A stretch of 64,000 nucleotides of DNA, taken from assembly GCA_965202585.1 (NCBI GenBank), contig OZ241828.1, forward strand, positions 54,312,001 through 54,376,000. The letters are read 5' to 3'. Position 1 is the first letter of the stretch. Every line of letters starts with the position of its first letter. The notes under the pieces were generated by a model that saw only the letters and a list, made by a program, of their open reading frames with translations, did not search any database and was not told the DNA's origin. The translations under genes and the position numbers were made by a program. Positions 1,336-64,000 of this stretch are shown here, piece after piece. The DNA is from Thalia democratica (Eukaryota).

Positions 1336-2636
1336 CTTGTGTTTGATGCACTATAAATGACTTTCCACTTCCAAAGGGTGCAAAAATTCCAATTGAAAAT
1401 GGGGACTCAGCTCTGTAAATAATGTTGGCAAGAGTTTTTGAATAAACTGAGAATCCAAGATGATCAATTTCTCCAACATTGTCACCAACTAATATGTTTT
1501 CTGTTTGATATTAGTGAAATGTATTAAAAAAAATTAGTACATAAAAAGTTTAACAATTAAAAAAAAGCTTTTATTTCTTTAATATTTGATTATCTTAAAC
1601 TTAAATTTTTAAATACTACAGTGCTTAAACACTTATCCGGACAGTTTCAGTTGAAAAGAAAATTTAAAACATTTTCAATAGTAAGCACAAACATTTTTGT
1701 ATGATACAAATATTTAAGCTATCATGATGTGTAAAAAATTTCAAGGGATTTTGTAAATTCTGCAGTTTAGTTTATCATGACGTAACAATACTACTTAAGC
1801 CTACATTCAAACTTTGTTTATAACTAGTTTAGTTATCAAAAACCTTTTTAAGTAAAGTAGTTCAGTTAAAAAAAAATTAAACAATACTATTTAAAATATG
1901 ACTTACAGTTTTTTATTTGAACTTTTAAAGTTTTTTGATAATTGATTAAATTCTTAGTTTTTTAAGAAAACTTATGTATAACAGTTCTTTTATGCTTGAT
2001 TTTTATTTCAAACTTTATCATAGAAGTTGTTAATTCAAACACTTTTGTTTAAGATATGAGATGGATAATTTTTTTTTTTGTTTTATTTTTAAGTTATATA
2101 AGTTTGACACACTTAACATACCAAGTTTTAGAAATGGACAATACATCAATAAAAGAAAACAAGTTGCACTAACCATTGAAAATAAACAAGAAGTTTGTAA
2201 AATGGTAAAAAAATCAATGTGCTAAAGGTTTTTATAACAGAGTAGTTTAGCATACTCAGGTCGCATTTTTTATGACATTTTGAAAAGTAAAGAAAAGTTT
2301 AAAAAGTTCAAAGCAAAAAAGAGGACCTAAACTAAAATGCATTGCAGAATATACAGTAGTTATATTATTTAATGAAAAAATTGATTTTTTGTTTTTTTCT
2401 GGACATGTTTAGAGAAAAATCTTGCCAATCATGTCCTGATAAGTGAATAAGAACTGTACAACTACATTGATTGTACATAGTTAAGGTTATTTATTTTAAA
2501 AGTTGAGTAAAGTCTAAACTTTAACAGAAAACATTCAATTTTGTATATAAAACTGATGTTAATAACCAAATTAAATAATGTATAAATTACCTTTAGGTGA
2601 AATTACTCTTTTTATCAACTTTTCATCACTTGCCAT
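1336..2636 (-). CDS. KAP-family P-loop NTPase (NKPD1-like), copy A, first two coding exons; the rest should lie left of the window
   Basis: Exon 2636-2591 (MASDEKLIKRVISPK, phase-1 donor gtaatt) splices to exon 1500-1336 (ENILVGDNVGEIDHLGFSVYSKTLANIIYRAESPFSIGIFAPFGSGKSFIVHQTQ). This has the KAP D-x-LG N-terminal motif and an intact Walker A (APFGSGKS). Both exons are below the ORF-track cutoff. Confidence 0.85.
1619..2456 (+). mobile_element. pogo/Tigger-like non-autonomous DNA transposon, copy A
   Basis: TIRs cagtgcttaaacacttatc / gataagtgaataagaactg with TA target duplication. Internal remnant at ~2150-2320 reads KRKQVALTIENKQEVCKMV...DILKSKEKF, resembling a CENP-B-type N-terminal HTH. 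Confidence 0.75.
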
Positions 2637-2889
2637 TTCTATCTCTAATTATTGCACATTATTTTGTCTAAAAAATTACAGTATGTTTTAAGCTTCTACT
2701 AGGCTAAGAGCTTTAAAAGTCCTCATATTAAAAAAATATTAAATACATGTTGAATAAGTAACAAAATTAAAAAAAAATTATAAATTAAATAGTAATTATT
2801 ATTCTAGTAAAAGTACCCTTATTATATACTACATTTAAAAAAGACAATTACAAAACAGACACTGCATACCTTAATTTAGAACTATTATA

Positions 2890-3620
2890 TATAAAAATGG
2901 CTAAAGGATTTGAGGCTTAAATTAAATACTGATAAAACAAGGTACATGCTCTTTCAATTTGGTAAAACAAAAGTTTGAAAAATACAAAACAAGGTACTTT
3001 TTAATTCAAAATTTTTTGTACTAAATCTTTAATTCACTTCTGATAAGTCATGTAAAATACAGTTTGTTGTGTTGGAGTAGGACGAGTAAAAGCTAAAACT
3101 ACTGAGATTGATAAACTAGTAAATAAAGCATTAAGGTGCATTAATTTCTAAGGTTGGAATGAAAGTGTTAGCAGTCCAAAAATAGAAAAGAAAATATCAG
3201 ATGTTGAACATATATTTTAGTATGAGTTAGGAGTTTTTATGCACAAATCTAAAAGAGAAACTTTGCCAGTTAACTTTAAGCCATAACTTTACAAATGTTA
3301 ATAAAATTCATAATCATCTAACAAGATTTTCAAAAACAAACCTTTTTTTTCAAGAGTAAATAGTCTTTATGGCCTTAAGAAATTATCCTACCTATGTTGT
3401 AAACTATGGAAGAATTGCTTAAAAACTTAAAGGTTAAAGCTATTTTAAAGCACTTCATTGTGAAATTAGAGATAAATTACTTAAAAGACAATCAAAAAAA
3501 TATCAAGCTTAATCTTTACTTACCATTACTTAAACTTATGTCTTTGTATTGGTGTTTGTACTTTTTTTGGGCTGATTGCTGTTGGTCTCATAAACTGGGT
3601 GTATAATGGTTTTATTATTA
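2890..3620 (+). mobile_element. CR1/L2-clade LINE, decayed 3' fragment, copy A
   Basis: Broken frames read KWLKDLRLKLNTDKTRYMLF, SHVKYSLLCW, KLVNKALRCI, LPVNF, HNHLTRFS, LSYLCCKLWK. These are typical of the RT C-terminal/3' region of CR1-like elements. Borders approximate. Confidence 0.7.
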
Positions 3621-5469
3621 CTTTGTTTAAAAAAAATTTTTACTGTATATAAAATTTAATAGTGCTGTTTCATCTTCATTGATAATGTGATTAAACAAGT
3701 AGGTGTTTTTTTTTTAATTTGTTTTACTAGATTTTAAGTGTTTATCTGTTTCAGAAGATAGAGATTCTGAATTTAGGTGTGCAAACTTCATATTTTTTAG
3801 ATATTCTGATAATTTATTTCTTTTTATTAAAATTTAGTTTTAGGTTTTAAAACAGTTTATCAACCTTGTTAAAATACTTTTATTTTTACTTTATTTTTTA
3901 AAATATTTGTTAAGTTTTATTATTTTATTTTTTAAGTTTAACTGTTCAGTTTTAGGAGTGATTTTATTTTAAGTAGTTTAAACAAATTCAATCAATTAGT
4001 CTAGATTCAATTGATTAAAACTGAATTGTTTAAAAATTTATAAAACAGTTAAAAAAATTTTTAATAGCTGTAATTTTTTACCTACCTACAACCACATATA
4101 CTGAAATTTCTAGACACTATTTAAAAACACATGGTGCTCTTACAGTTTTATGACTATATTAAATAGTTTATGTATACTGACATTACTAATTCTCCCCTTT
4201 TATTTATATTTGAGATAATTGTTGTAATTTTTGTGGTTGCTCTTGGGAGGAGACTGTGGGGAGCCCATGGTAAACTATGGTTTCCATGATCAATGTTGGC
4301 AGTGATGGGTTAAAAAAGAATGCTTACCATTTCTAAAATTGGAAAAAAAGGAAAATTTTAAACTTAGAATTAATTACTTTTTAATTTTTTTCTTTTTGTC
4401 TTAATTATTTTATTATTGTTTTAAAGCTACCTCAAAGTATTAGTAACACGTTAATTGTGTGTAGCTTGATGACCAAAAGGTCTTTCTCCACACTAATCCT
4501 TAGTTGTGAGCATTCACATTTTTATTTCTCTCTTTTCTTTCTTTTACATGTGAAATTTGATTAAAATTCCAGGTTTTAATGATTTTGTTCAAAAATTTTC
4601 TAGTTCCAGGGTATTTTGCCTAAATTGTCAAATTACACAGGTACTTTCAGGTTTTTTAGCATCCCTGTAAAAAAATATAAGTTAGCTTTTCATTCAAGTT
4701 GGGCAGTTTTTATTTTTTGATAGTAAGATTTAATATAAAACTTCTCACAGTTGAAAGTGTAAAAAGAATGGAACATAATTCCAGCATAGCTACTTGTTTA
4801 TTATTCATGAAAGTTTGTATACATCCTCATTATTTTTGTATGTAGGTTGATTACTATGGAGAAAATTTCTGTGGAAGAATTTGCCTATAGATAAAATATA
4901 AACACATCCAGAAGTAAAGTGTAGAGCAGTGGAATAAAGCCCAAAACTTGCAAACTGACTCTTCTGAAACTGGAAGGATGAAAGATCTTTTTGATTAGAT
5001 TAAAATACAATTTAATTTTCTTGTTGGTTCAAATTTTATTTAACTATTTTTTTTTGTATAATGCAGTTAGTATGATTTAATTTTACACTTTACATTTTAA
5101 ACTTATTTAGATACTTTTACTTGGTTTTGGAAAATAAAAATTTTTAATTTTTGTTTTGTGTTTTCTTTTTTAGTGTGATAATGTAGAATATTAGGCTTGA
5201 GAAAACGAGAGAATTCAAAAAAAGCTTACTGTCCTGTTTTATCTTTAGTAACTTTGCATTAACAAAATTATACATAAAAGTGTAAACTGTGAGAAGTTTC
5301 ATATATAGAAGTTTGTGATTTTTTAAGTAAAACCTTTAAAAAAATCTTTGATGCAACTCGGCTGTAGTTCTAAGTTTGCTTCTGATTGGCTAATATTCTA
5401 CTAATTTAAGTTATAAAACTGTTTTTTTTTTATTTTTTAAATATGTTGAGGTTTAAACAATAAATCTCT

Positions 5470-6420
5470 AGAGAGCTTCACACTTAGGGAGTCTTTATAC
5501 AATTTAGACAAAAGTTTAAAAAATAATGGGTTTAAAACAACACTATCATATGTTCAAAATAATTCTATCGGAAAAACTAGAAGAAAATTAAGGAAAAAGA
5601 AAGTTTTTTACTACAATCCTCCTTTTAGTAGTTGTATAAAAACAAATATAAGAAAAAAATTTCTAAAAACAGTATCCAGTGATTTCCCAAAATCAGGCTT
5701 TTATGGTTCTATATTTAATAGAAATATAATTATAATTTCATATTCCTGCATGCCAAATTTAGAAAAAGAACTGTCCAATCACAACCAGAAATTACTTCAA
5801 AACTCAAATGAAACAACTAAAGAAAACAGCAAATTATGCAATTGTAGATTAAAAACTAATTGCCCAGATAACAGTGAATGTCTTACTAAAGGAGTCATTT
5901 ATAAAGCAATAGTTATGTATTACAAAAAGGAAAAATATTTACATTGGTTCAACTGGAAGACAATTCAAAAGTAGATTTTATGAACATACGCAATCTTTTA
6001 GAAATGAAAAAAAGAAAGAAAGTACAAGATTAAGTAGGTTTATGCATAAAATCAAAAATGGCAATGCTGATTAGGGAAAAATGATAAAATGGGAGATTAT
6101 TCATCGCACTAAACAAAATAAACCTAGTAAAATTTGCACCCTCTGCAATTTGGAGAGACTTGAAATTGCATCTACAGACAACAATAAACTTTTAAATTTG
6201 AGATCAGGTTTTGTGGGAAAATATAACATTTCACAAAATTTTATTTGAAGTCTTAATTGACTAAACTTAAGTTTAATTTACCTACCTTAGTTTTCATTAT
6301 ATAATTTTGTTTTGTCTTTTGATAATATTCTATTTTATTTTGATTGCAACTTGTTAGTTTGTTTACTTTGTTACTTGTGATCATTGCTCTAGCGTGAAAC
6401 AACTGTTTAGTAATTAACTC
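5470..6420 (+). mobile_element. Penelope-like retroelement (GIY-YIG endonuclease end, probably Neptune-type), decayed, copy A
   Basis: YYNPPFSSCIKTN...FPK...IFNRN...SYSCMPN...HNQK...CNCR...CP...C...VIYKA...YIGST...FKSRFYEH...KWEII...CTLCNLE, with stops and frameshifts. Borders approximate. Confidence 0.85.
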
Positions 6421-9400
6421 AATTTAAGTTTTGTATTAATTGTATTTTTTATATATTTAGGTAATAGGAGTTTGCAAAGAGGGTATAGATTGAAAGTTTT
6501 GGGTAAGGTCTGTTAGGGATAAAGTATAGATGTTTTTAACATACTGCTGTATTATCACTTTACTTCATTTGCATAATGTTATTGTTGAAAAATTTTGAAA
6601 CCTTACAACTTCAAATTTTTCTATGCACTAACTTACACTACATACTTATAGTTATAAAAATTATTTTTTCAACTGTGGGTGTTTACCTAAAATACAAGTT
6701 TAAAAGAAAAAAACTGTTAAGTAAATGCTTACCTCAGCTATTGTTTACTAAACAAAAAAGAAGTAAGTATAAAGAAAACTGACAATAACTGTTTTTAATC
6801 AGAAATCTTTACATTAACAATAAAAAAAAAACAATTTCTATACCGACGTAATTTTTTTTGATAATGCAAACTGTTTTATATTCTATTTTCGTAGAAATGT
6901 CAAACTTAATGTCTTAGTCTGAATTCTAAGAAATAAGAATCTTTAGTACAACATATTTATGTTTAGAAACAGTTTTAAAATTGTATACTCTATTATAATG
7001 AATATTAAAAGAACAAATTAAAGTTAGATAAGGTTTTTTTTACATTTATTTTAATTTAATTTTCAATGTTTTGATCTAACAATAAAGCAAACACTTTTAG
7101 ACTTAGTTTTTCTTTGGTTCATTTTAGTTGTTATAATATGTATTCATACATTTACATATTTTAGTAATTTGTTTAAGAGCTGTTAATAGTTACATTTTGC
7201 AAAGCATGGCTGACAACAAATATCCATTTGAACTTGTTGGAATTTGGTTTTTAAAATAAGTAATCTTATTAATAAAGAATCTTTAAAAGATTTACGTATA
7301 AATAATGAAAGATCTTATTTTAAAAACAAATACCAAATAATTTTCTTGTTTTTTTTATTTATAAATAAGTTTATTAGTAACTAAAAATATCAAACTATGT
7401 CGTTAAAATGTTTGAGCATCGAAAATTAAAAAAATCAACAAAATGTTTTACAATAGTTATACACTAACTTGAAATGTGTATTTTCATTTGTTTTTATTTG
7501 TCTTTAACTAAATAACTTTATATTTTTAAAAATCACTAATTGTTCAAGTGCTTTCTCTAAAAATTTACTAAGAAAACTATAAAAAAAATTAAGAACAGAA
7601 CTAAGGCAGTGTAAAGCTAATTATATAACAGGGCGATAAATAAAACTTAAAAATTTAGATTTTTTTTTTTAGTATTTAAGTTCGACAATTAAAATTCTGA
7701 CAACTAAAACCAAAAAATATATAATGTTTTAAAGTCGAATTTAGGTTTTGTAAAAGTTTTTTCCAATTATGAACGACTTTAAATATATATTATAAAATGA
7801 ATAAATATATCTGTTTTAAATGACAGTGTTAGCTAACATCAAATAAATCTCAATAAATCTTGAAAAACTTGTTAGAAAATGTAGTTTTACTTATATAACC
7901 TAATAAATTATTATGTAAAATATCAATGCCACTAACAATAATTGTCAGATTTAAACCAGCTTAAAGTCAATAGACAAAACGTTAAAAAGTATCCAAGTGG
8001 TGTGCGACTCGATAAGCGAAAGGATTTTTTGAGCACCAGGTCCTAGAACCAAATATTTTAGGGCTTTTTCTATTGTTCAGTAAACTAGTTCATATTTAAC
8101 ATATATTATATATACATGTGCTAATTTTACAATTCTGGCTACTAACTATGAAACGTATTGAGCACAGATTTGTTGAAAAACTAACGTTACAATCCATATA
8201 CTTTGACAACTGAGCTTAATAAAACTGTTAAATATTTTGTTTCTAAGTTATTCAGTGTTATCACACGTTTATATTTTATCAATTGTTAATACATTAATGC
8301 ATACAGAATTTATGTTTGATCTTACTTAAATTTCTAAGTATTTTTTTTACAAGTTTATGTTACATACCGATTAGTTTTATTATTTTTACTCAAATGTTAA
8401 TATAACTTAAGTAAATCGCAAAGTTGTACAACAAAACTAGTTTATATGCGAAGATTATCTATTAGCACATTAGATGATAATAAAAGAACTAAAAGTCGAC
8501 TAATACAAGTACTTTGTACGAAATGGGTTCTCTTTTGTTTAAAATAAAACTTTAAAACTAGATTAGTGTGAATGTTTAAAAAAGATCAAAATATACAGTT
8601 ATATAAGTAGTTACAGTTAAATAAGATTTCTAAGTAATCGATAAATTTATTTAATCACTATCTGGGATATTAATAGATTAATTTAAAATACATAAGTAAA
8701 ATAAATACATTAATGTAAGCAAGACCACGTAAGCATCATAGCTGATCAGTCTAATAACCGAATTACACTTGTTGTGTAAGAATTTGGCTGAAGTGTTTTG
8801 TTGTAGTATTTACTGTACATCCTAAAAATAATTTTGTTAGTCTAATCGTTTTATTGTTTTTAAGTTGCTGAAGATTATATTTATTTAAAATTTATTAACT
8901 TTTTGCTTATACACTGACTGATTTTTATTTAACATAAGTTTGTAAAACTATTATTTTTATCAGTTGTCAAGAAATGCAGTACAGCTTAGGTTTTTTTAAT
9001 GTTTACAAGCTTATTTTAGCGCTTATTTATACCAACTATCTCAAATAACCTTGCTTATTTGTAATTTTCTATTTAGAATTTAGCTTTCTTTTATACCATT
9101 TTTATTTTTTACATAGAACTTTATAAACTTAGTAAATCACTGTAATATGACATTAAACTGCTATTTAGTGCATTTTATTTTTATTTTTTAGTTTAACAAG
9201 TTTTTTATAATTCTATACAAAGAGTTAAACTTTAAGCTTAACTACACAAATAATTTTAAGTATGTGAATTAGTAGTTATAGTAGAATTAGTAGTATGTAT
9301 CATATAGGATAGACCATAAAAGAACCAGATTTTCTAATTGTAATAAATTTTGATTTTTCTGAAATAATAGCACGAATTCTAAGTAAACATTAATTAATAA

Positions 9401-9733
9401 AAACTAATATTACCAAACATAATTTAACTAAAATTTAAGAAATCTGTAGATAAGGAATTTGATAAGGAAAATTATCAAAAATTTTAAATAAATAGAAATT
9501 TTTTTGATAAAATCTAATAATATAAACTTAGGATGAAATTTTTACTAGCTAACTTATGAAAGCATAGTTTTAAATTTTAACATAGAAGTTGTGTGTTAAA
9601 GTTTGGTTAATTTACAAATTTTATAATAAGCTTAAAAGAACCTAACATTTTGAACTTACACTAACATTATTCAAATCATCAATTAATGTTAATTTTTATT
9701 TAGTGTCCCTTTTAGTTTATTGAAAGTTATTGT

Positions 9734-10109
9734 CAGGGTTTGCCAAATGATTTTAGCAATTTTTCTCTTGATTTTCAAAATTTCCTTCAGGTTTTTAACA
9801 CATTTTTGGGTCTATTTTAGTTTAAAATTAAGTTTAAGGTAAAAAGTAGTTGAAGATTATAAAAAAATTGAAAAGATACTGTAAATTTATTTTAAATTAG
9901 TTTTTAATAAAAAAATTGATGGTGACAAAAATTTTTACCAATATGATAAATTTTTTGTGTCAAGTGGAAATCTTTCTACTTAACTTATAAAAATTGTTTA
10001 GAATTCTTGTTTTTTCCAGTTTTTTTTTTAATTTCTCAAATTCCAAGTTTTGTAGACTAAAATGTCAAGCTCCAGTCTTTTCAGGATCACAGGTTTTTCG
10101 GTAACGCTG
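9734..10109 (+). mobile_element. CAGGGTTGCC-family MITE (~370-410 bp, hAT-like ends)
   Basis: Begins cagggtttgcc, ends ggtaacgctg. Flanks tattgt/tatagt. The empty site is visible in the third copy at 63568-63573. Confidence 0.8.
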
Positions 10110-10261
10110 TATAGTATAAAAACTTGAAAAACTAAAAAGAATAGTTGTTTTAATAAAATATATTAACGTGTTGTCAATTACAGCAATGATAATGCTCCTA
10201 GTATCTACTTTGAAATAATTTATGTCAGAAATAAAAAGTACATGTCTAGGTTTTACGAAAA

Positions 10262-10267
10262 TTTATT
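10262..10267 (-). promoter_or_regulatory. Putative AATAAA poly(A) signal of ART gene A
   Basis: AATAAA ~75 nt after the stop. Present at the equivalent position in copies B (50932-50937) and C (63701-63706). Confidence 0.55.
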
Positions 10268-10342
10268 AAAAAAGAAAGATATTATCTGTGATATTCTTAA
10301 ACCTTGTCTATAAAGAACAAGTGTACCCTGGGCAGATATGTG

Positions 10343-11721
10343 TTATGCTCGAAATTCGAAGCTTATCAAATACCTTGGTATGGTTACTTGGTAATCTGCA
10401 ACAAAGTGATCTTCTATACTTCTTCTATCAACTGAAGTATTTCTGTATCTTCTTCCCAAATGATCTCTTCTGTACTCTTGTTCAGCTTTTTCTATACGAT
10501 CTTTTCTGTACAGCTCTTCACTGATTTCCATGTTTAATTTGTTTACGTATTTTGTAAATTCAACGTCATGTGATTCATCTACGAGCCTTATAAATGAAAG
10601 ATTTTTCAATATATTACGGACACCTCGCATATTCAAGTTTTCGTGAAAAACAGTTTGCAACTTTTGCGACTCGAGAATTTCGTTGACAAACATGAGGTTT
10701 GTCTTTGTTTCAACGTTTCTTCCGCTGGAAAATAAAGAAGCCAAATCAGAACTTTCGGTTAGGTACACGCCTTCTCCGAAAAGACCATTAACAGAGTTTA
10801 TGTAACCAGTTTCTAAAATACCAGCTACACCTTTTTTACCAGTACCATGAAACAACATTAAGTTGCTGCTTTTTACATCGTCTGTTGCCTTTTTATTTTG
10901 CTCGATGACTTTGTATATTTGAGAAAGTTCTAAAGTGTCGTTGTAGTGTCCTGTCGTAGTTGTGTAAAAAAAATCTTTCACGAACTTAAACTCATCTGAA
11001 GTTTCTTTCAGCAGTTGGAGATTGTACTTCCAATTATCTTTATTAATATTTTCCAAATCTGAAAAAGAGTTAGCTTTTATTGTAAATAAATCGTAAAATA
11101 ATTTAAAACTACTTACTTATCAAAGCAGTCCATAAATTTGAACATAAGTTATATTATTTTGTTATCGTAATTGTTAAAAAATTATTTTATTTATTTTTAC
11201 TATTCTAAAAGAAAACAGTAGTTGCAAGTATTTGTTAGATAAAAGCATTCAGTATAAATAAAGATATATATGGAAGGGAACTGTTATTCAATAAATATCA
11301 TATTTATGTATATATACATATCAATATGATAGTTATTGAACAATATATTGATATACATATAAATTTAAATTTGTTGGTAATTTTTAAATTTGTTAAACTA
11401 AAACAAAATTAAAAGAATATTTTCTAGGGGGTTTTTTAAAGTAAGCCCATATTATGTTTTGAATTTTGATATACTGTCTTGTCCTAGACAAGACGTTAAA
11501 ACATAACCGTAGTGTGACACCAGATAACCGAAAGGTTCTTCGTGCACCAGGGTTTATAGGGTAAATAACTAGTATAGGGAAACTGTTTTGAAATTTATAC
11601 CCTGTAGGCAATTATAAAAATAAGTTTTGAAAATCCTTCTTTTAATCTATTTGATTGATCACAAACAGTTTTATTAAAACCACGCGATAAAGCTAACCTT
11701 ACTTGATGACCAAAATGTCAT
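10343..11721 (-). CDS. Stand-alone PARP-fold (ARTD-like) ADP-ribosyltransferase, 244 aa, copy A (intact)
   Basis: Exon 1 11721-11703 (MTFWSS, donor gtaagg, phase 1) plus exon 2 11058-10343 (acceptor tttcag) gives 735 nt in frame. Motifs: LFHGT, GLFGEGVYL, LASLF, DHFVADYQVTIPRYLI. Confidence 0.88.
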
Positions 11722-28940: not shown

Positions 28941-28979
<39 letters not shown>

Positions 28980-46189: not shown

Positions 46190-47150
46190 TCTAGAGAGCT
46201 TAACACTTAGAGAGCCTTTATACAATTTAGACAAAAGTTTAAAAAATAGTGGGTTTAAAACAACACTATCATATGTTCAAAATAATTCTATCGGAAATAC
46301 TAGAAGAAAATTAAGGAAAAAGAAAGTTTTTTACTACAATTCTTCTTTTAGTAGTTGTATAAAAACAAATATAAGAAAAGAATTTCTAAAAACAGTATCC
46401 AGTGATTTGCCAAAATAAGGTTTTATGGTTTTATATTTAATAGAAATACAATTAAGATTTCATATTCCTGCATGCCAAATTTAGAAAAAGAACTGTCCAA
46501 TCACAACCAGAAATTACTTCAAAACTCAAATGAAACAAATGAAGAAAACAGCAAATTATGCAATTGTAGATCAAAAACTAATTGCCCAAATATTAGTGAA
46601 TGTCTTGCTAAAGGAGTCATTTATAAAACAATAGTTATGCAAAACAAAAAGGAAAACAATATTTACATTGGTTCAACTGAGAGACAATTCAAAAGTAGAT
46701 TTTATGAACATATGCAATCTTTTAAAAATGAAAAATAGAAAGAAAGTACAAGATTAAGTAGGTTTATGCATAAAATCAAAAATGACAATGCTGATTAAAG
46801 AAAAATGATAAAATGGGAGATTATTCATTGCAGTAAACAAACTAAACCTAGTAAAATTTGCACCCTCTGAAATTTGGAGAGACTTGAAATTGCATTTACA
46901 GACAACAATAAACTTTTATTTGAGATCAGGTTTGGTGGGAAAATGTAACATTTCACAAAATTTTATTTGAAGTCTTAATTGACTAAATTTAAGTTTAATT
47001 TACCTACCTTAGTTTTCATTATATAATTTTGTTTTGTCTTTTGTTAATATTCTATTTTATGTTAATTGCAACTTAGTTTGTTTACTTTTTTACTTGTGAT
47101 CATTGCTATAGCATTAAACAATTGCTTAGTAATAAACTCAATTTAACTTT
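46190..47150 (+). mobile_element. Penelope-like GIY-YIG fragment, copy B
   Basis: ORF 46472-46738 (CNCR..CP..C..VIYK..IYIGSTERQFKSRFYEH); duplicate of the 5.5-6.4 kb element. Confidence 0.85.
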
Positions 47151-50100: not shown

Positions 50101-50409
50101 TATAATTTAACGTTTGTTAAAGAAATCTGTAGCTAAGGAATTTGATTGGGAAAACTATCAAAAAATTTAAAAAGTACAAAATTTTCGGTAAAATTTAATA
50201 ATATAAAACTAAGATAAAATTTTTACGTACTAGCTTATGAAAGAATAGTTTTAAATTTCTACATAGAAATTGTGTGTTAAAGTTTGGTTGATTTATAATT
50301 TTCATAATAAAGTTTAAATAAACTTAACATTGTGAACTAACACTGACAATATTCAAGTAAATTATGTTGAGTTTTTTTATTTTCCTTTTAGTTTATTGAA
50401 AGTTGTTGT

Positions 50410-50797
50410 CAGGGTTGCCAAATGTTTTTAGCAAATTTTTTCCAGATTTTTGAAAATTCCACCAGGTTTTCAAAAGTACATATTTTTGGTTGTAATTTTA
50501 GTTTAAAGTTAAGTTTAAGGTAAAAAGTGTGTGAAATATTATAATAATATTGAAAAGATACTGTATAGCTACTTTAAACGTGTTTTTTGATAAAAAATTT
50601 CGATGATTACAAAATTTTTTACCTATATAATAGATTTTTTGTGTCAAGTTGAAATTTTTCTACTTGACATGTAAAAATTGTTTAGAATTCTAGGTTTTTC
50701 CATGTTTTTTTTTCAAAATTTCTTAAATTCCAGGTTTTGTAGACTAATTAGTCAAACTCCAGGCTTTTCAGGATCCCAGGTTTTTTTGATAACCCTA
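50410..50797 (+). mobile_element. CAGGGTTGCC-family MITE (same insertion as 9734-10109)
   Basis: cagggttgccaaatg ... gataacccta; flanks tgttgt / tatagt. Confidence 0.8.
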
Positions 50798-51012
50798 TAT
50801 AGTATAAAAACTTGTGAAATTAAAAGAATAGTTATTCTAATAAAATATATTAACGTTCATAGTAATGATAATGTTCCTAATATTTACTTTAAAAATATGT
50901 CAGAAATAAAGTGTATCTAGTTTTACAAAACTTTATTATAAAAGAAAGATAATATCTATGATCTTTTTAAACTTTGTCTATAAAGAACAAGTGTACCCTG
51001 GGCAGATATATG

Positions 51013-52344
51013 TTATGCTCGAAATTCGAAGCTTATCAAATACCTTGGTATGGTGACTTGGCAATCTGCAACAAAGTGATCTGTTATGCTTTTCCGATCA
51101 ACCGCAAAATTTCTGTATCTTCTTCCCAAAAGATCTCTTCTGTACTCTTGTTCAGCTTTTTCGAAACGATCTTTCCTGTACTGCAATTCACTGATTTCCA
51201 CGTTTAATTTGTTTACGTATTTTGTAAATTCAACATCATGTGATTCATTTACGAGCCTTTTAAATGAAAGATTTTTCAATATATTACGGACACCTCTCAT
51301 AATCAAGTTTTCGTGAAAAACAGTTTGCAACTTTTGCGACTCGAGAATTTCGTTGACAAACATGAGGTTTGTCTTTGTTTCAACGTTTCTTCTGCGGGAA
51401 AATAAAGAAGCCAAATCAGAACTTTCGGTTAGGTACACGCCTTCTCCGAAAAGACCATTAACAGAGTTTATGTAACCAGTTTCTAAAATACCAGCTACAC
51501 CTTTTTCACAAGTACCATGAAACAACATTAAGTTGCTGCTTTTTACATCGTCTGTTGCCTTTTTGTTTTGCTCGATGACTTTGTATATTTGAGAAAGTTC
51601 TAAAGTGTCGTTGTAGTGTCCTGTCGTAGTTGTGTAAAAAAAATCTTTCACGAACTTAAACTCATCTGAAGTTTCTTTCAGCATTTGGAGATTGTACTTC
51701 TAACTATCTTTGTTTATATTTTCCAAATCTGAATAAGAGTTAGCTTTTATTGTATATAAATCGAAAAAAAAATAAAACTACTTACTTATCAAAGCAGTCC
51801 ATAAACTTAAACATAAGTCATATTATTTTGTTATCAAAATTATTAAAAAAATGTTTTATTTTTTTACTATTTTAAACGAAAACAGTAGTTGTAAGTATTT
51901 GTTAGATAAAAGCCTTCGGTATAATTAAAGATAAACATTGAAGGGAACTGTTATTCAATAACTATCATATTGATATATATATATAAGTTTAAATTTGTTG
52001 GTAATTTATAAATTTGTTAAACTACAACAAAATTAAAAGAACATTTTCTAGGTGGTTTTTAAAGTAAGCCCATATTATGTTTTGAATTTTGATATACTGT
52101 CTTGTCCTAGACAAGACGTTAAAACATAACCGTAGTGTGACACCAGATAACCGAAAGGTTCTTCGTGCACCAGGGTTTTTAGGGTAAATGACTAGTAAGG
52201 GGCAATTGTTTTGAAATTTATACCTTGTAGGCAATTATAAAAATAAGTTTTGAAAACCCTTGTTCAAATCTATTTGATTGATCACAAACAGTTTTATTAA
52301 AACCACGCGATAAAGCAAACCTTACTTGATGACCAAAATGTCAT
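51013..52344 (-). pseudogene. PARP-fold ART, copy B: TAG at codon 16, new in-frame ATG at codon 22 (223-aa ORF 51013-51684); pseudogene or re-initiated allele
   Basis: Exon 1 52344-52326 and acceptor 51728 are conserved. TGG->TAG at 51700-51702; CTG->ATG at 51684. The rest is open and differs from A at 17 of 222 residues (hand count). Confidence 0.75.
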
Positions 52345-53006
52345 CAATTCTATATACCAGCTGGTTTGACAATAGTTTTAAAGTTAAGTGTTTTTTTATT
52401 TAGTTTATGTATACATATGCGCTTAGCTGTTTGAAAATTTTGAGTAACAAAAATTATTATATATTTCGTAAGTTTATAGCTTTTTTTATTTAGTTTGAAA
52501 GTATTTTAATCCAATGAAATTCAACTATTTATTTAAATATAATGCTTTTGTATAACTAGTTTCATGTTTGTGTTTTTAAATTTAAAACATAATAAAAATT
52601 GTGTTTTGAACACAGCGTTTTTCAGCTAAAAATGCGTCCTATACCGGCAGTTAGTTCGTACCTAGCAAGTGCGTACCTAGTTGGCAGGTTGTGTACTTAT
52701 TCTTAACAAGTAGATTATAACTTGAAAATATTTAGATAAATATTAATAACAAAAAACTAACTTATAGATGAGGATTCAACAACAGTTCAATATACTGTAT
52801 ACACCATTAAGAAAAACAAAAAATATATTTTTGTCATTGTTTTAATTTATTTCATAAGGTTAAAATCTGTTAAAATTTACTGTTAATAATTCATTTATTT
52901 TAATAAAAGAATAAATGCTAATAATCATAGCTTAAAAAAACTTCATCTTTAAGTTTTTTTTGTCTTTATAAAGATAGCTTTAAATAGAAGTTTAATTAGT
53001 TTATGT

Positions 53007-53609
53007 GGAAATGGGTCAAATATGCACGAAGGCTTATTTTCGAAAATGGTCCTACATGCTCGAAAGGACCATTTACACTAAGGGACATTTTTGCAAGAAG
53101 ACATTTTTCTTGGAGGGTCACTTAAGCATTAAGGGTCATTTTTGCATGAGAGTATAAAAATTATAAATAGAAATAAATATAAGATGACTAAAAAAAAAGC
53201 AAAATAAAAAGATCAAAGATAAATTGATATAGAAACTAAAAAAAGGCAAAAATAAGTTACCGACCAAGGTTAAGGGTTAGGGTATAAAAAAAACAGAAAA
53301 ACTAATTAACAAATATTGTTAAGAAAAAACACACAATAAATATAAATTAAAAAAAATAAATTCATAAAAAAAGAGAGAAAAAAAATTATTACTGATCTAG
53401 GGTTAGGTGTAGGGGTAACAGTGATAGTAGAAATAAAATAAATAAATTCAAACTTCAAAAAAAAAAATTTAGAAATATTCAACCCGTCCAGAAGTGTCTT
53501 CATGTAAAAGTGTCCGTTAGTGCAAAAGTGACCCCCCGCGCAAAGTTTACGCCCTGCAAAAGTTTCTTCGTGCAAAGGTGCCCCTTTGTGCATATTTGAC
53601 ACCTAACCC
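53007..53609. mobile_element. Foldback/Mutator-like host element, copy B (603 bp, uninterrupted)
   Basis: Ends ggaaatgggtcaaatatgcac / gtgcatatttgacacctaaccc with a perfect 9-bp TSD agtttatgt (52998-53006, 53610-53618). Confidence 0.88.
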
Positions 53610-56600
53610 AGTTTATGTAAAGTAAAAAAAAATCAAAAACAAAATCTTGCAAATTATTAATTTCTTTATCAATTTACCTTACAAATAATGTCTTGAAAAA
53701 TAATTTTTTTTGTAATATATTTCATAGATTGAGTTTGAATTAAAATTTTGTTAACAAAAAAATTTAGCAAAAAATTTTTTAAATTCTAAACTTTTTTGTA
53801 CACGACATTTTTGGTAGCTTTTTTCGAAAGCTATTTCATTGGCTAGAGGCTAGACACAGAGCTATGAAAAATTCTACAATAGAAACTTAAAATTTCTTCA
53901 AGATGAACGTTTTGTTTGGCTGATTACTTAACATTTTGTAAAAAAATAAGTTAAGAAAACTTTTTATTAGTTTTTTATTTCAATTTAAATGTTTTCTATA
54001 AGCTTTCTAAAATAAATATTGCGTAACAGGTGAAATTTGGTAGTCACGGCAAGAGAGTCCTAATCACGCAACTCATCCATATTCTAAACTTATTTTTAAT
54101 TATGTCATAAAAACATCTGAAGCTAAGCAATTAACAATTTTCAAAAAATGATTTAAAGTATTACATTAGGTGTTATTTACTACTGTTGAAAAAAAAAGTA
54201 TTTTCTAGTGTGGTAGTAAGCATAATTTATGTATATAAATATAATAATGTTGAGATAAAGTAATGGGAAATTAACTGTAAAAAAGAATGAATGATAAAAA
54301 TCTATACAGATGTTTAATCATATGTTCCTAATCACGATTAAATCAAAGAAATAACTAAAATTAAATTTAAGTACTAGATAAGTACTTAAATATAATCAGT
54401 TGTAACTTTTAATATAGTTAGGTGCTATTTAACAGTTTAAAATTTTAAGTTTTTTAACATTTAAGTTTGTATCCTATTTTATAAAAACGTTCTACAATGC
54501 GTTGTTACCATAATGTTGTATGTAATCAAATTTTAACACTTTTTATAAAAAAAGGAAAAAAGAAAAATAAAGTTTTGTAAGACCTTCACAAATTAAACCA
54601 ATAGTGTTTTGAACAAAATACAGCAATTAATTGTTATATCAATTTATTTTATTTTATACAATTTAAATCTTTACAGCTTAATTAAATATCTCGGATTTAA
54701 TATGACTTATAGTTTAAACTACTGTTATTCTTTGTTATTTTCTATTTCCTAAGCAGCTTAAGCGCTATAACTAAATACCATTTAAAAGCAATTGCAGAAA
54801 AAAGTGAAGTAATGATATTTGAAAACAAAATAATTAGACGTTTATTATTTAAATTATATGTAATAATTTATGCTGAGAAAAGGGTTCAAAACTATTACAG
54901 GAAAAAAATGCTTAGGAACAAAAATTAAGTAGTTACTCAGAATTTACAATACCTAATTTTAAAAACATCTTTATAAAAAAATTAAAAAAAATTGTAAAAT
55001 GCACATAAAAGCCAATTGTGAATATATCTATAGTCCGTTTCCAAAAATCTAATAAAAATAAGTGTTTAAACAAAATTTATTAGTCATATAAATGATTTTA
55101 ACTTTTGTACAAACTAGTCCAGGTATCATGATTCAGATTTAACTTTTTGTTTACTATGAAAATCTTTTATACACCTTTACTTTTAAATATTTTTTAGACA
55201 TGATATGTAAAAAACACTAAGCAAAATAAAAACTTTTAGTATATCAAAATGGTAAAAATTGTCAAGTAAAAATTGAAGAAATATATTTTACTAATAATTA
55301 ACAGTATTTAAAAAAAAATATTTATATGAACATAATATTCAAACTTAGATTTAAACTGTTGTAACTTTTTTTTAGCTAAAAACTTAAAAACGGCCCTTTC
55401 TGCTATAAAAACTTAGTAAAAGACAAAAAAAACATAATGTCAACAAAAAGTAAGGCATTTAATGAAAGCAACGTGGTACAATACTATTACATTAAAGTTT
55501 AAAAAATCTATCTACAACTAAGCCTAAAATGTATACTAGAAGCTATGAAGTATAAACAAATAGTAAACAAATCTATCACATTTAAACTAGTTACAAAAAT
55601 TGTGAAAAACAAACAAAACTAACTAAGTATTTATAAATGTGGGTGAATAATATATACTTTAAAAATCAAGTATAAATTTTTTTATACGGCCTGAAATGAA
55701 TGACTAATTTTATGAATAAATGACTATTAAAACACTCTTAACCTTCAAACTACTACAATCTGGAATTGTGAGCCAAAATGTCACTTTCTAACATAATCTA
55801 ATTTAAACAAAGTCGTTATAAATAAAGCGTTAGTAAGTTTAGCGGTTTAAAATCGGCATATAAAGAATAAAATAAAAATTTAAAGGAAGCAGTTTAGTTA
55901 CAAATATGAACACATTATTTCAAATAAAAGGAACACGTTCATTTTTTTCTCTTAAAACATGTTTTAAAATTGGTACATAAAATATTATTACTGGGTGTAA
56001 GAAAATAACGATTTAAAAGTATTAAACATTTGTATCGATTCTTATATTCTGTTAACCCTTCTTTTGCTTTATTATTCATTATCATTTGTACGAACTTGAA
56101 AAATATATAAAATGATTAGTAGAAGTTTATTATATGCATGATGAAAATTTAAAGATATAATAAACATTGTTGCTTTATAAGCTTATCTTTAGAATTATTT
56201 GTTTAATATTTTCATTTATCCTAATTGCCTACAAGTCTGTATTTTATTCACCTTTTTTTTAAATTTTTAACGTATAACATTAATTTTTCATAAAAACAAC
56301 AAAAAAGTAGGTGGAGTTTTCTAATTTCTTCAGTATTTAGCTACCACACTATTTATATTAATGCATATTATTGCATCTGAATATTAGAGGTTAGATCCGA
56401 TTACAAGACACTAAACTAATTCTAATGTACGGCAAAATTGAATATCCAGTTATTTTTTCTAGAAAATTTTATAAAATGATTTAGTGTTAGGGATTTTAGT
56501 AAAGCATTTGAAATTTATTAAATTAAAGTAGTATTTGAATAATTACACATGTAACATAAATCAACAATAACCAGTTATCACTAACACCTATAAAACTCAG

Positions 56601-56834
56601 ATATTTAACTTGCTAGGTTTTTCAAATTTACCTATTATTAAATTAAACTAATTTGCCACTAATTTTGCAACCTAAACTTTACAATTATTTTTTATAAACC
56701 AAGCTTTTGTTACAACACAAGTTTATTATTTTTAACGCAGTAGAAAAACAAACTCAGCAAAATCCTCAATATAACACAGTTCAAAAACTAAAACATTTCT
56801 CATCCAAAATAAAAACAATTTAGCTCATAAAAAC

Positions 56835-57686
56835 TCAAAATTCATCATGCTTCTTTTTACCGTTCACATCTTTCAGAAAATCAATCTCCATGCCGTTGAC
56901 CGGGTCTATCAAAGTGAGAATGGCAGGTTGGCGCCAGCTAGTGATCCAATATGGAACTTCTGAAATATCAAAAGGAATAGCCAATCCGAAGTTGTAGCAC
57001 TTTGAAGCATCAAGCCTTTCACAGAGTTCAAACTTCATTTCAATAGTCACATTTGAGAGCTGGTCGTAATACATCCTAGAGATGGAAAATTTGTCGAATA
57101 CGTCTAATTTCTTTTTACACCAATGCTGAAGTGGTAAGTTATAATATGCTATATACTTACATAAGTCTCCTTGAAAGTTAGTAACAATAGCTTGGTTTCT
57201 TAATTTTCCAAAAACTTGCAATTTAAACAATTCTGAAGAGCTTATTTCTGCGAAGTATTCAACTAGAAGCCCTGGACACTTGTCAAATATTTGAAATTTT
57301 TCATCAGTCGTGTAACAGGATTCACCTATACAGGATATTTTGTTATCTATATCGTAAAGGCTGAAGACAAGAAATATGAATTTTGGGTCTTCAGTAACTT
57401 TCTTCGGAATGATTAGCTTTTCATCAATTTGGTCGGATGTCAATCGGAATTCAGCTTTAATCTGGAGGCCATCAGTAAAAAAAAGAATGTGGATTTTGTC
57501 GTAGTTATCTAACGACTGCTTAGCTCCGGAAGCGTTCTCAATCAACTTCCTTATGACGTCACATTCTCTGCTGTTTTCTTCTTTTTGAGGACCTTCACGG
57601 GTCGGAGTTGCCGACATTACTGTGGATGATTGCAACAGCAGAAGAAACATGAAGGTGACCAAAATCACATTATATGAAAACATCAT
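56835..57686 (-). CDS. Unknown Cys-rich secretory-pathway protein with HDEF, 283 aa, copy B (intact)
   Basis: Open ORF; signal peptide, eight Cys shared with copy A, identical DVNGKKKHDEF end; acceptor 16 nt upstream of ATG. Confidence 0.85.
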   Translation of the reverse strand: MMFSYNVILVTFMFLLLLQSSTVMSATPTREGPQKEENSRECDVIRKLIENASGAKQSLDNYDKIHILFFTDGLQIKAEFRLTSDQIDEKLIIPKKVTEDPKFIFLVFSLYDIDNKISCIGESCYTTDEKFQIFDKCPGLLVEYFAEISSSELFKLQVFGKLRNQAIVTNFQGDLCKYIAYYNLPLQHWCKKKLDVFDKFSISRMYYDQLSNVTIEMKFELCERLDASKCYNFGLAIPFDISEVPYWITSWRQPAILTLIDPVNGMEIDFLKDVNGKKKHDEF

Positions 57687-59434
57687 TACTCAAAAGTAAA
57701 ACCTAAAAAAAGTTTTAATTTAAAACAAACTAAAAAGCTTGTAAAAACTATGGTTTTAGTTATAAGAGGACTATTTAAAAGAGGGCTTTAAATTAGTTTA
57801 ACAACTGTATTACAACTTTACAAATAAGTAAACTTATAAGTTAGATAAACTTACAAAATACACTAAGCTCAAACATTTTATTTTAAATTTTATAAGTACT
57901 TTCCTTTTCAAATAATATATATTGTTTATAAATAATGGATAGAATTTCAGAAAATTGAAACAATGCTATTCATCTTCAATGAAAAGTCAAAGTATAGTTT
58001 GTGGCAAACTTGTTTTCTAATTAGATTAATATATTTTTACTGAAGTATTTATATAACTCAATAAACAATCAAAATTGTAAAACAAAAATAATCTTCAAGC
58101 AGAAATCTTTAATTAGCTCATTAGAGGTTAGAAAAACAACAAAGCCTTGAAAAGAACAACTAACTTGTACAAAATGGACTATTTCTGTTTGAAAAAATAA
58201 AACTTTTTACTAGGTCAGTGTAATATCTCAATGCAATAAAGGTTTAAAACCTTTTTAAAATATAACAACCTAGTTTTGAAAAATTCTTATAAAAGTTTTA
58301 AACTTTGTTCGCTGAAAGATTATCTTATAGAAAATATTTGAAATGACTAAAATTGCAAGCTAAGGTCAGCTTTTTACAAATTTAAGTTATTTTTTTAGCT
58401 CTATTGAAGCAGGTTTTTTCTTAAGGTTTTCTTAAATAATTTTATTCGTTTTTATGTGAATTTGTGTTTAGAAATGTTTAAACAATCACAAGACTTTAAA
58501 AAAGAGAAAGTATTATCACCACTTATACTAAATTAGATAAATAAAATAAGTTTAACTTCGCCAAATGTTTTTATTTTTTATTCGAAAATATTTTTAGTGA
58601 TTGTAGTAAGCTCGAATGTCATTAGGTGTTGAATAAATTTAAAGTAATATATCAACATTTTTATTTTTTTCTTGCTTCAACTACAAACAGTCGTTGGTAA
58701 TAATTTTTTTATGTGGTTTTATATTAATATGTCGTAGCTAAAAAAGATTGCTCAATTTACTAATTTTATTTAATTATACACTAATGAGCTTGAATTTTTG
58801 AATATGTAACATTTTAGTTTTTTGTTAAGATCTTAATGCACGAACAAGTTTTTAAATAACATTATAGATAAACAACATTGTTATGTGCAGTTTACTGGTT
58901 TATTATATTTGAAATGGTCATAATTTTTTGCCACCGAAATATAGTAGTAAATAAAATATTTAATATGCACATCTTTATTTATTGTCGATTTTAAAACTTT
59001 TTTTTCTAATATCCTTATATTGCAATATTTTACAACAAAACTACATTTCTAAGTATTAAAGTGCTTAAATGAATAAAAAAAACTGCTACTTAACTTATCT
59101 CTTTGCTAGTTCACTTTTTTAAGACATACACTTTGTATTTTTGCAACTTAAAAAGAAAAATACTAGTAAAAGCTTCTACTTTGAATAAAGTTTTTTAAAT
59201 GATACAAAAATCGAAGAGTATTAAACACTTTTTTTTGAAATTTAAAAGAATTAAAAACATCAAAAAAGATAAACAAAGTTTTTTAAAGGTTTGTTATATT
59301 ATCGTTATTTAATATGTCAGGTTAACAACCAATGACTGAAACGTAAAAAATTTAAAAAAAAATTTAATTAGCTACTATAAGTAAAGAACAGTGCGATTGA
59401 ATCTTAATTAGAACTGGGTGCTTTTGAAAGTCGA

Positions 59435-60918: not shown

Positions 60919-60938
60919 ATACAATGCTATTTATGGTA

Positions 60939-62175: not shown

Positions 62176-63794
62176 AATCTGCGGTCCATCACCATGTTAA
62201 TGTGGATCGCCGAACAAAAATATTTTTAAGTCGATTTTTTTTTCGGTATAATGATGTTGTTGATTAATTTTTTTACGACACTGGAAAACGTTTAAAACCC
62301 AGCAAAATGTTTTACTGCTTAGGCTTAAAAATGTGAAAAAGACAGATTGGCTCTCTTGCACTTTTTTTTCTCAGTTTATATTTAACTGCCTTCTTTTAAC
62401 AGCAACTGGTGAACTAAAAATAAATTTTAAAAGTACTTGGATTAGGTAAATATTTATGAAATACATGTTTAAAAAATTAACCAAATGCTAATGTTTTTTT
62501 TGAACAAAAGTAATGCACAGTAATAAACTCAATTTTTTTTTTGAAACCTAGGTGTTATGTTTAGCATGTAATTTATACCTAAATTTTTATAATAGAAACT
62601 CCACTGTGTAGTATATTTAAGTGTACACAGAAACATTAAAAACATCATAATAAAAAGTATTAATTTTTTTTTTCATTGTGAGTTGTTTTTATTTTTTTAC
62701 ACTTGAAATTAATTCTTATAAACATTAAAGCGCTTATAAATACGGTGTCACCTATGAGTTTTTATAATTTTACATAATGTTATTAAATTGCTGAAGATTA
62801 TAACTATTTTGCTTTCTAATATTTTTCTTTATACGCTAACTGTTTTTTGTCTATTATTAGTTATAAAATTATTAAGTTAGTTATTATGTTAAAAGAAAAG
62901 TTAACAGCTGAGGTAATTTTTTTCTTGAAAAAAAAAATAATTAAACTTTTGTTTAAAACATAAAAAAATGACATTAAAGGCAATTCATAAACTTGGTAAA
63001 TTATTGTAATAATATTCCAATTGGTTTTAAATATATTGACTTTTTTTGAGCTATACAAGCTTTTTAAAATTTATACCAAGAGCTAAAGTTTAATCTTAAT
63101 TATACAAATTATTCTAAGTATTTAAATTCGTAGTTGTGATATCATTCATACTATATCAGAACCAGACTTTCTTATTGTAATAACATTCGGATTTTCGGAA
63201 GTATTTAGAACTAATTCTAATAAAACGATCAAGTAACAATTAGTTCACAAGTATTAATATTTTACAAACATAGTTTAACTTTTAGTTAAAAAATCTTCAG
63301 ATAAGGAAATTTAATAATAAAAATTAAACATAACAAAAGAAAAACTAATAAAAGTTTTCGAGAAAGTTTAAAAAAAATGTAACTTTTATACACTTCTTTT
63401 CAAAATAGAGGTCTAAACTTTAACATATAAATTTAGTTTTAAGTTTAGTTGTTTTAGAAATTTTATGATACAGTTTAAAAGAACTCAAAACTGTATATTA
63501 ACAGTGACATTATTCGAAATATTTAGGTTGAGTTTTTTTCTAACATTCGTTTTATTTTATTAAAAGTTGTTGTATAAAAACTAAGAAAGTTAAAAATAAT
63601 CAAAAAATATAAAACGTTGTCGACCATAGCAATGAAAGTATTCTAAAATGTTTTTTTAAGAATTTTGTCAAAAAACTAGTGTATTTAGGTTTTACGAAAC
63701 TTTATTTTGAAATAAAAGAAAATATTTATGATGTTCTCAAACTTTGTCTACAAAGTACAAGTTTACCCTGCAAAAATAAAAGTTATGCTCGAAA

Positions 63795-63925
63795 CTAGAG
63801 TTGGTAAAGTGCTAGTAGTAGTAGTTGTTATGCCAACTGAGAACTGAAGCGTTTAAACTTTTTTTTTTTTGCTTTGTGTTAAAAATTAAACGCTTCAGTA
63901 AATATAACACTGCTTTTTACCAAGC
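63795..63925. mobile_element. ~130-bp palindromic insertion in the last codons of ART copy C
   Basis: Inner inverted repeat actgaagcgtttaa (63843-63856) / ttaaacgcttcagt (63886-63899); outer ttggtaaa / tttaccaa. The ancestral FRA-stop remnant lies at 63783-63794. Confidence 0.65.
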
Positions 63926-64000
63926 CTCGTGAGTTATCAAGTACCTTGGTATGGTTACTTGGCAATCTGCAACAAAGTGATCTGTTATACTTTTCCGATC
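63917..64000 (-). CDS. PARP-fold ART, copy C, C-terminal 27 codons; continues right of the window
   Basis: Minus strand reads DRKSITDHFVADCQVTIPRYLITHEAW-stop. Confidence 0.8.
   Translation of the reverse strand, partial: DRKSITDHFVADCQVTIPRYLITHEAW

Follow-up and report, generated by a model that had tools for sequence, protein, structure and literature searches.

We analyzed a 64,000-nucleotide window of the Thalia democratica genome (C4:54312001-54376000 of an 802-Mb assembly; ~25% G+C) that contains repeated copies of three unrelated minus-strand genes, which code for a predicted membrane KAP P-loop NTPase (KAP), a stand-alone PARP-fold protein of the ADP-ribosyltransferase type (ART) and a putative resident of the endoplasmic reticulum lumen (ER protein). 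The window probably samples a lineage-specific birth-and-death tandem array, in which segmental duplication has multiplied a block that held three unrelated neighbor genes by chance. The initial annotation of this DNA had recognized the three genes, their common strand, their order and a ~38-kb period, and self-BLAST, tblastn and Pfam agree with it on these points. It had also proposed that the ER protein, KAP and ART work together as sensor, transducer and effector. For such a module we found no independent evidence beyond co-duplication: the closest ART paralog, on contig C9, stands alone, ER-ART pairs occur without KAP, KAP paralogs on C1 and ER paralogs on C5 and C6 are partnerless, and both trios of the window have broken members.

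Self-BLAST of the window revealed a direct duplication, with unit A on the left copied onto unit B (Table 1). Nucleotide identity between the two units declines rightward, from 94-96% at the left end to 92.8% across 10 kb, then to 88%, 81% and 78-80% at the right end. The offset from A to B starts at 38.0 kb, rises to 40.7 kb because of a 2.7-kb insertion with inverted termini that is private to copy B, and returns to ~38.2 kb because of a 2.3-kb foldback element private to copy A. The closest relative of unit A is a unit at C4:54.1745-54.1845 Mb (98.7% and 97.1% nucleotide identity), compared with 80-93% identity between A and its neighbor B. The fact that unit A is nearest to this unit (54.175-54.182 Mb), and not to B, implies that duplication or conversion also acted over ~147 kb.

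Whole-assembly six-frame searches showed that the pattern continues on C4 beyond the window. A ~230-kb minus-strand array (C4:54.15-54.38 Mb) contains five KAP genes and seven ER-ART pairs, and two of the KAPs are each preceded by two such pairs. The smallest repeated unit is the ER-ART pair itself, in which both genes share a strand, with ER 5-7.5 kb upstream of ART (nine copies). Pairs without KAP were detected at 54.235, 54.376, 54.65 and 54.67 Mb; the latter two are additional, inverted pairs located 0.3 Mb from the array (54.650/54.656 and 54.667/54.673 Mb), and both of their ER copies and one ART are broken. In addition, contig C28 (about 0.6-152 kb) carries a multi-unit array that is similar at the protein level, with a spacing of 39.1 kb versus 41.7 kb between two ER genes. 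C28 is probably an alternative haplotype that was left unplaced.

Given that part of the array recurs on C28 at the protein level, and that unit A and the 54.175-Mb unit are 97-99% identical, haplotypes or collapsed repeats might have been set in tandem by the assembly. Such an artifact is extremely improbable. A and B differ by 7-20% at the nucleotide level and carry private transposable element (TE) insertions and private nonsense mutations, the array on C28 is likewise multi-unit but has a different spacing, and DNA runs from two studies contain 53-60% of the words sampled from both stretches. The idea that A and B are one locus assembled twice, which the initial annotation had named as fatal to its proposal, is contradicted by the 7-20% divergence, the private TEs and the C28 array.

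A birth-and-death array of this kind would grow by unequal recombination between ~38-41 kb units with the order ER protein, ART, KAP, and the smaller ER-ART sub-unit would duplicate separately. Gene conversion or recent duplication may keep the KAP exons and the ART region alike between copies, with the central third of the ER protein retaining older divergence, and copies would die through nonsense mutation and TE insertion. We infer duplication and conversion as the mechanism. As in birth-and-death multigene clusters, tandem units are nested within one another, divergence varies in a mosaic fashion along the unit, and pseudogenes and TE insertions are frequent. Unlike in such clusters, however, the unit holds three unrelated genes and not one family. 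If these genes are simply co-duplicated, the locus is a clear but ordinary birth-and-death case, and its value lies in the parts.

Divergence along the ER gene is uneven. Between ER-A and ER-B, identity is 77% in the N- and C-terminal thirds and drops to 42% over alignment columns 109-205. In this core, the nonsynonymous rate (dN) is 0.40, the synonymous rate (dS) 0.69 and their ratio (ω) 0.58, compared with a dS of 0.12 in the C-terminal part and 0.12-0.29 in the flanks (core versus C-terminal part, Fisher p = 3e-4 for dS). Overall, the core showed ω of 0.58-0.72 and dS of 0.55-0.8. Since dN and dS are both raised and ω is below 1, the gene appears to be a mosaic of conversion-homogenized flanks and a core that keeps old lineages. 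The ER protein had been described as hypervariable; its core is indeed far more divergent than its flanks, but dS is raised too and ω is about 0.6. Positive selection on the ER protein is not supported, as dN/dS in the variable core is not above 1. The youngest ER pair (ER-A and the 54.18-Mb copy) differs by 19 nonsynonymous and 1 synonymous changes, which is not significant (Fisher p = 0.15), and the flanking DNA differs similarly (1.1-1.7%). Within the array, ω was 0.4-0.8 for ER and ART, and dS of the ART region between copies was 0.03-0.2; comparison of ART with the C9 copy yielded an ω of 0.16-0.26.

Many copies have decayed. Four of the nine ER copies are broken, and neither trio in the window is intact: ART-B contains two stops, KAP-B contains one stop and a TE in intron 1, and KAP-A lacks exon e2.

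In the proposed module, a variable ER-lumen protein would sense a ligand, a KAP with four transmembrane (TM) helices would relay the signal across the ER membrane, and a cytosolic ART would respond by ADP-ribosylation, the three genes being kept together and amplified because they are co-functional. We regard this as unlikely, and equally so the possibility that it is an ER-membrane surveillance system of a pelagic eukaryote, amplified as a unit under pathogen pressure. Several observations nevertheless weigh against chance co-duplication. None of the five KAP-containing units departs from the order and orientation ER, ART, KAP, and outside the window the array seems to include at least two trios with no broken member. 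Loop 1 of KAP, which is predicted to be non-cytosolic, is the most variable segment of this protein (10 of 40 columns, versus about 12% elsewhere). KAP NTPases and PARP-like ARTs are both typical, recurrent families of conflict systems. Furthermore, at C1:47930000-47939999 (L011), an ART-like gene (3635-4228, plus strand) and an ER-like gene (6375-7223, minus strand) lie tail-to-tail, 2.1 kb apart; we estimate the chance of such an adjacency at ~0.5-2% (224-1004 ARTs in 802 Mb and three non-array ER loci). The topology of a module would also be coherent, with a signal peptide and HDEF tail on the ER protein, TM helices in KAP and an ART that lacks a signal peptide.

On the other hand, all KAP linkage derives from one ancestral block and thus amounts to one independent observation. 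ER-ART pairs have multiplied and survived in the absence of KAP, and the C9 ART is alone and under stronger constraint. This ART groups with the array ARTs in a tree (the branching order within the clade is not settled) and has the lowest ω of the family copies compared; no ER or KAP gene was detected nearby. Two KAP paralogs on C1 (L019 and L020) have no ART or ER match in the 10-kb loci around them, and no ART or KAP was found within 5-10 kb of the ER paralogs on C5 and C6. The linkage, whose recurrence in adjacent windows the initial annotation had suggested as a check, continues along the C4 array but is absent at the C1 KAP, C5 and C6 ER and C9 ART paralogs. Both window trios have broken members. 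KAP exons are 94-98% identical in nucleotide sequence among array copies whereas the ER cores are 58% different, so the two do not show matching co-diversification. Finally, the catalytic Glu is missing from the array ARTs, and the non-cytosolic loops of KAP are just about 40 and about 23 residues long. In a literature search, KAP NTPases were found with ADP-ribosyltransferases in bacterial contexts alone. If co-function were true, the trio would be the first case in eukaryotes of a KAP NTPase that is coupled across the ER membrane to an ADP-ribosyltransferase, and it would provide a testable role for KAP NTPases, whose animal functions are, to our knowledge, poorly understood.

It is also rather unlikely that the ER protein and ART form a functional two-gene pair, with KAP as a bystander in the larger duplication unit. 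The C1 ER-like gene (47.936 Mb) that adjoins an ART-like gene is the closest non-array ER paralog (28-30% amino acid identity, no HDEF tail), and this pair is the sole adjacency outside the array. However, it is convergent, in contrast to the same-strand arrangement of the nine array-type pairs, and its ART belongs to a different clade than the array ARTs. The C5 and C6 ER paralogs lack a nearby ART, no ART or KAP occurs within 10 kb of a distant ER-like gene on a 17-kb Tara Oceans contig (L021), and the two proteins would reside in different compartments, the ER lumen and the cytosol. Partner genes were not found on the Tara contigs with ART (4-5 kb) or ER genes, but apart from L021 these are 5 kb or less and too short for synteny. 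The fact that the pair is the smallest repeated unit favors this explanation, as does the C1 adjacency.

A further explanation is that a large mobile or self-amplifying element carries the block as cargo and thereby spreads ART and its neighbors. All copies are in tandem at a single locus save the ART-only copy on C9, whose intron and flanks are preserved, as expected of duplication at the DNA level, and the 38-kb unit is not bounded by terminal repeats or a transposase. Although the ART family is very large and dispersed and TEs are abundant in the array, cargo of this type is very unlikely. Tandem birth and death remains our preferred explanation, and the three genes are described below as its parts.

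The KAP-B gene was modeled as seven exons coding for 619 amino acids (body at 28536-35750); the start exon and the 3′ end beyond e5 lie outside this model. Both Walker-A exons were located because the canonical KAP paralogs on C1 place the P-loop on a separate upstream exon. KAP-A, which had been listed as a gene of the window, is present, but a single exon (Walker-A, 1336-1500) lies inside the window and the assigned start at 1336 is the 3′ end of this exon. The seven exons of KAP-B join in one open frame save one TGA in the Walker-A exon, 15 codons before GSGKS. In KAP-A, a dispersed repeat that ends in a poly-C tail stands in place of the 183-nt exon e2 and the sequence around it. The three remaining array KAPs are open over all seven exons. 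Other candidate ends were discarded: a start at MKGFLKK (35757), which would have given KAP a degenerate P-loop (SSKT), was superseded by the upstream Walker-A exons (42066-42230 and 1336-1500), and two candidate 3′ exons contained stops in other copies (26377-26625) or one stop in one other copy (28190-28324).

Pfam model PF07693 (cut-off 20 bits) matched e5 (55.4 bits) and e2 (21.6), and the Walker-A exon scored just below the cut-off (19.2). Walker A (GSGKS) and Walker B (DDLDR) are both present, and Kyte-Doolittle analysis of the 619-residue model placed TM peaks at residues 85-103, 144-162, 421-439 and 463-485, all between the two Walker motifs. The closest ESM Atlas cluster is eukaryotic KAP. 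These data agree with the original assignment of a KAP P-loop NTPase with four TM helices. As for the RRM that had been assigned to this protein, an RRM-like exon does lie between Walker A and B, but the match itself is sub-threshold (RRM_3, 16.7 bits, E 0.008; cut-off 22.9); its Atlas neighbors are all RRM families, at just 0.80-0.86, and a sequence search of the PDB gave no match for this exon. We conclude that KAP is probably a P-loop NTPase that spans the membrane several times and contains an RRM-like insert.

Compared with the KAP family (PF07693; animal Kidins220/ARMS and NKPD1, bacterial PifA-type), the array KAP shares Walker A and B, core motifs and TM helices inside the NTPase domain. 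It differs in the RRM-like exon between the core strand and TM3, in its five-copy tandem array, and in the lack of ankyrin or other known accessory domains. A KAP whose NTPase domain holds TM helices plus an RRM-like module is part of the value of this locus. The two compact canonical KAP paralogs on C1 (C1:43165000-43189999) are ~14 kb apart and both have the Walker A GVFARWGSGKSFLL; an RRM-like insert is present in one of them (L020:4867-5379) and not in the other (L019).

KAP is transcribed in the sea. Four KAP junction sides are confirmed by contigs of a marine metatranscriptome (run X9), of which the first runs through e5, e4 and the TM3 exon and the second links the RRM-like exon directly to e2. 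These spliced transcripts are 94-97% identical to KAP-B (window 28596-34053), which indicates that this organism or a close relative expresses the gene in open-ocean samples. Of 21 variant positions in the transcripts, 9-11 were common to other array copies and none to KAP-B, suggesting that the KAP-B changes are private and that the RNA stems from a different copy or allele, or from a close relative. Among the three genes, transcripts were seen for KAP only: none of the RNA runs contains the ART-A/ER-A stretch (10300-19500), a weak negative, since 4% divergence would sink a single gene below the word threshold.

The ART gene appears to consist of two exons. Its main open reading frame (ORF) has no ATG: throughout the clade, a TTG stands where distant paralogs have ATG, and the same TTG is found in Tara ART contigs, whose predicted initial M is a bacterial-style gene call. 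In every ART copy, a 3′ splice site (YAG) lies two bases 5′ of this TTG. A 46-nt segment from ATG to donor, ~1.1 kb upstream of the main ORF, is conserved in ten copies, including two Tara contigs, and in ART-A the two exons join in frame to give an uninterrupted protein of 253 amino acids. Because of its two in-frame stops, one per exon, ART-B is a predicted pseudogene or severely truncated gene. A 29-nt mini-exon ~70 nt upstream of the main ORF was abandoned in favor of the 46-nt exon 1, as it is out of frame and differs by 10 nt in length in the C9 copy. A 70-amino-acid ORF called upstream of ART in Tara contigs was also rejected; four stops interrupt its frame in the window copies, and the region is where ART exon 1 lies. 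Over 1.2 kb upstream of the main exon (window 12029-12232 and 11301-11700), nucleotide identity to Tara contigs is 76-82%, and this stretch presumably carries promoter or intron signals as well.

A minimal PARP-fold ART had been proposed from the window, and our results agree: PF00644 scored 40.9-43.5 bits (cut-off 26.7), the AlphaFold2 (AF2) model (pLDDT 82.6) matched the ART domains of PARP1/2/4 in Foldseek (E 1e-11, TM-score about 0.6), and the 253-residue protein stands alone. An ART profile also matches PARP2, PARP15, PARP1 and PARP12. Among 39 family members, His70 and Tyr98 are invariant, as is Glu126, whose counterpart in the alignment is the non-catalytic Glu in the "GEV/SEV" strand of PARPs. 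The H-Y-E triad is not complete in the array: the position equivalent to Glu988 is His in all array copies, with the strand DHFVAD corresponding to NEYIVYD of PARP1 in an alignment based on motif and model secondary structure, not on superposition. Glu occupies this catalytic position in 17 of the 39 members; His, Asn or Gln is found in the array clade, which in this respect resembles mono-ART or inactive PARPs. No signal peptide was found. Judged from its sequence, ART would be a cytosolic stand-alone PARP-fold protein that keeps the NAD-binding His and Tyr, and at best a mono-ADP-ribosyltransferase or NAD-binding pseudoenzyme.

The fold and the invariant His and Tyr are shared with PARP catalytic domains (PARP1/2/4 and mono-ART PARPs). 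Unlike PARP1/2/4, the array ART has no regulatory domain, carries a largely helical segment of ~85 residues before the last two strands, and lacks the catalytic Glu. The family is large, with 224 matches genome-wide among 1004 first-look candidates, and a Glu-less clade within such a very large stand-alone PARP-like family is a further part of what makes the locus valuable. Small interferon-induced proteins of the fish Gig2 family, which are reported from non-amniote vertebrates only, have weak N-terminal PARP similarity and lineage-specific tandem expansion (PMC3617106). By this published description, with which and not with Gig2 sequences our proteins were compared, both families are small and stand-alone, match PARP models in the N-terminal half alone, have a family-specific C-terminus and show large lineage-specific and tandem expansion; Gig2 may be the closest described analog of the ART expansion. 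Elsewhere on C4 (28.6-29.5 Mb, e.g., C4:29125985-29126389), six equal-scoring ART copies lie within open frames of 592-1536 amino acids, which suggests large multi-domain or element-borne ART proteins.

The ER protein has a signal-peptide-like N-terminus, judged by eye to be hydrophobic, and a KKKHDEF tail in all intact array copies, along with conserved cysteines. Its closest relatives, all from Tara and 55-67% identical, end in KDEL, NDEL, YDEI or NDGF. These features agree with the initial prediction of an ER-lumen protein, and suggest entry into the secretory pathway, with the HDEF/KDEL-type tail keeping the protein in the ER lumen. It resembles soluble ER residents of the KDEL/HDEL type in its signal-peptide-like start, conserved cysteines and C-terminal HDEF. 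Unlike known ER chaperones or enzymes, however, it has no sequence or fold similarity to them, and its distant paralogs on C1 and C5 lack the tail. A profile search yielded 11 matches among 1.84 billion representative proteins, and no relatives were found in JGI metagenomes. The AF2 model of ER-A is of good quality by its scores (pLDDT 80.5, pTM 0.77), and its fold had no match in PDB Foldseek, AlphaFold database clusters, exhaustive PDB alignment (best Z 4.5) or the ESM Atlas (TM-score <=0.29). An ER-resident family without detectable relatives beyond these 11 matches and without a fold match is the remaining part of the value of the array. Relatives of two of the window genes come solely from marine metagenome contigs, mostly of Tara Oceans.

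Table 1. Features of the window (window coordinates) and layout of the surrounding array on C4 (kb, descending)
Feature	Position	Strand	Evidence
Duplication unit A (partial): KAP-A 5′ exon, ART-A, ER-A	57..21142	-	self-BLAST
Duplication unit B (matching part): KAP-B 5′ exon, ART-B, ER-B	38051..59197	-	self-BLAST, 96% to 78% nucleotide identity to A
KAP-A Walker-A exon (GSGKS), intact; remainder of gene before window start, without exon e2	1336..1500	-	
KAP-B Walker-A exon, in-frame TGA (Arg to stop)	42066..42230	-	
KAP-B exon e1: TM1, ~40-aa loop, TM2	35246..35750	-	
KAP-B exon e2: KAP core strand (FIFVKFSAWQY...)	33871..34053	-	Pfam; donor confirmed by spliced metatranscriptome contig
KAP-B RRM-like exon, 111 codons, phase 2 at both ends	33287..33619	-	RNA shows direct splicing to e2
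KAP-B TM3 exon	31196..31367	-	spliced metatranscriptome contig
KAP-B exon e4, TM4	29126..29317	-	spliced metatranscriptome contig
KAP-B exon e5: Walker B (DDLDR) and KAP core	28536..28844	-	Pfam PF07693 55.4 bits; spliced contig; Atlas 0.92 to KAP cluster
ART-A exon 1 (predicted): ATG + 15 codons + 1 nt, donor GTTAGT, phase 1	12203..12248	-	length and frame conserved in 10 copies
ART-A exon 2: PARP-fold ADP-ribosyltransferase domain	10343..11058	-	Pfam PF00644 40.9 bits; AF2; Foldseek
ART-B exon 1, in-frame TGA (Gly7 to stop)	52762..52807	-	
ART-B exon 2, in-frame TAG (Trp to stop); 92% aa identity to ART-A	51013..51728	-	
ART-C, last 25 codons; whole gene C4:54375926-54376672, intact	63926..64000	-	
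ER-A: single exon, 280 aa, signal-peptide-like N-terminus, KKKHDEF tail, intact	18635..19477	-	
ER-B: 283-aa paralog, 64% aa identity to ER-A, intact	56835..57686	-	
2.7-kb insertion, ~300-bp terminal inverted repeats (39397-39696, 41681-41981), copy B only, KAP-B intron 1	39360..42027	.	self-BLAST
2.3-kb foldback element, unit A only; inverted arms 12856-13337, 14677-15166	12848..15172	.	
C4 array (1/3)	54382 ER (broken); 54376 ART-C; 54369 ER-B; 54363 ART-B; 54354-54340 KAP-B; 54331 ER-A; 54322 ART-A	-	
C4 array (2/3)	54313-54300 KAP-A; 54288 ER (broken); 54282 ART; 54273-54256 KAP; 54242 ER; 54235 ART	-	
C4 array (3/3)	54223 ER; 54218 ART; 54209-54194 KAP; 54182 ER; 54176 ART; 54167-54151 KAP	-	

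Several repeats and mobile elements were identified in the window. The 2.7-kb insertion of copy B contains three plus-strand ORFs of 88-116 amino acids (40086-41093), for which Pfam gave no match. In the foldback element of unit A, each arm of ~480 nt is made of ~28 copies of a 16-17-nt unit (GTCACTTTTGCACGAGG-like), and the two arms surround a 1.3-kb center; these repeats give rise to long bogus ORFs at 12850-13486 and 14568-15306.

A short interspersed repeat of ~200-330 nt, 75-81% identical between copies, occurs at 29921-30251, 31407-31715, 34386-34726, 9772-10015 and 50389-50699; these copies lie within introns of KAP or downstream of ARTs. The contig of this repeat in a DNA run had a depth of ~2 million, compared with ~1000 for flanks, indicating an extremely abundant SINE- or MITE-like element. 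In addition, both units contain a plus-strand fragment of a GIY-YIG ORF (5750-5974 and 46472-46738) between ART and the KAP Walker-A exon, with a Pfam match just below threshold (E 1.6e-4). A Penelope-like or other GIY-YIG element is its probable source.

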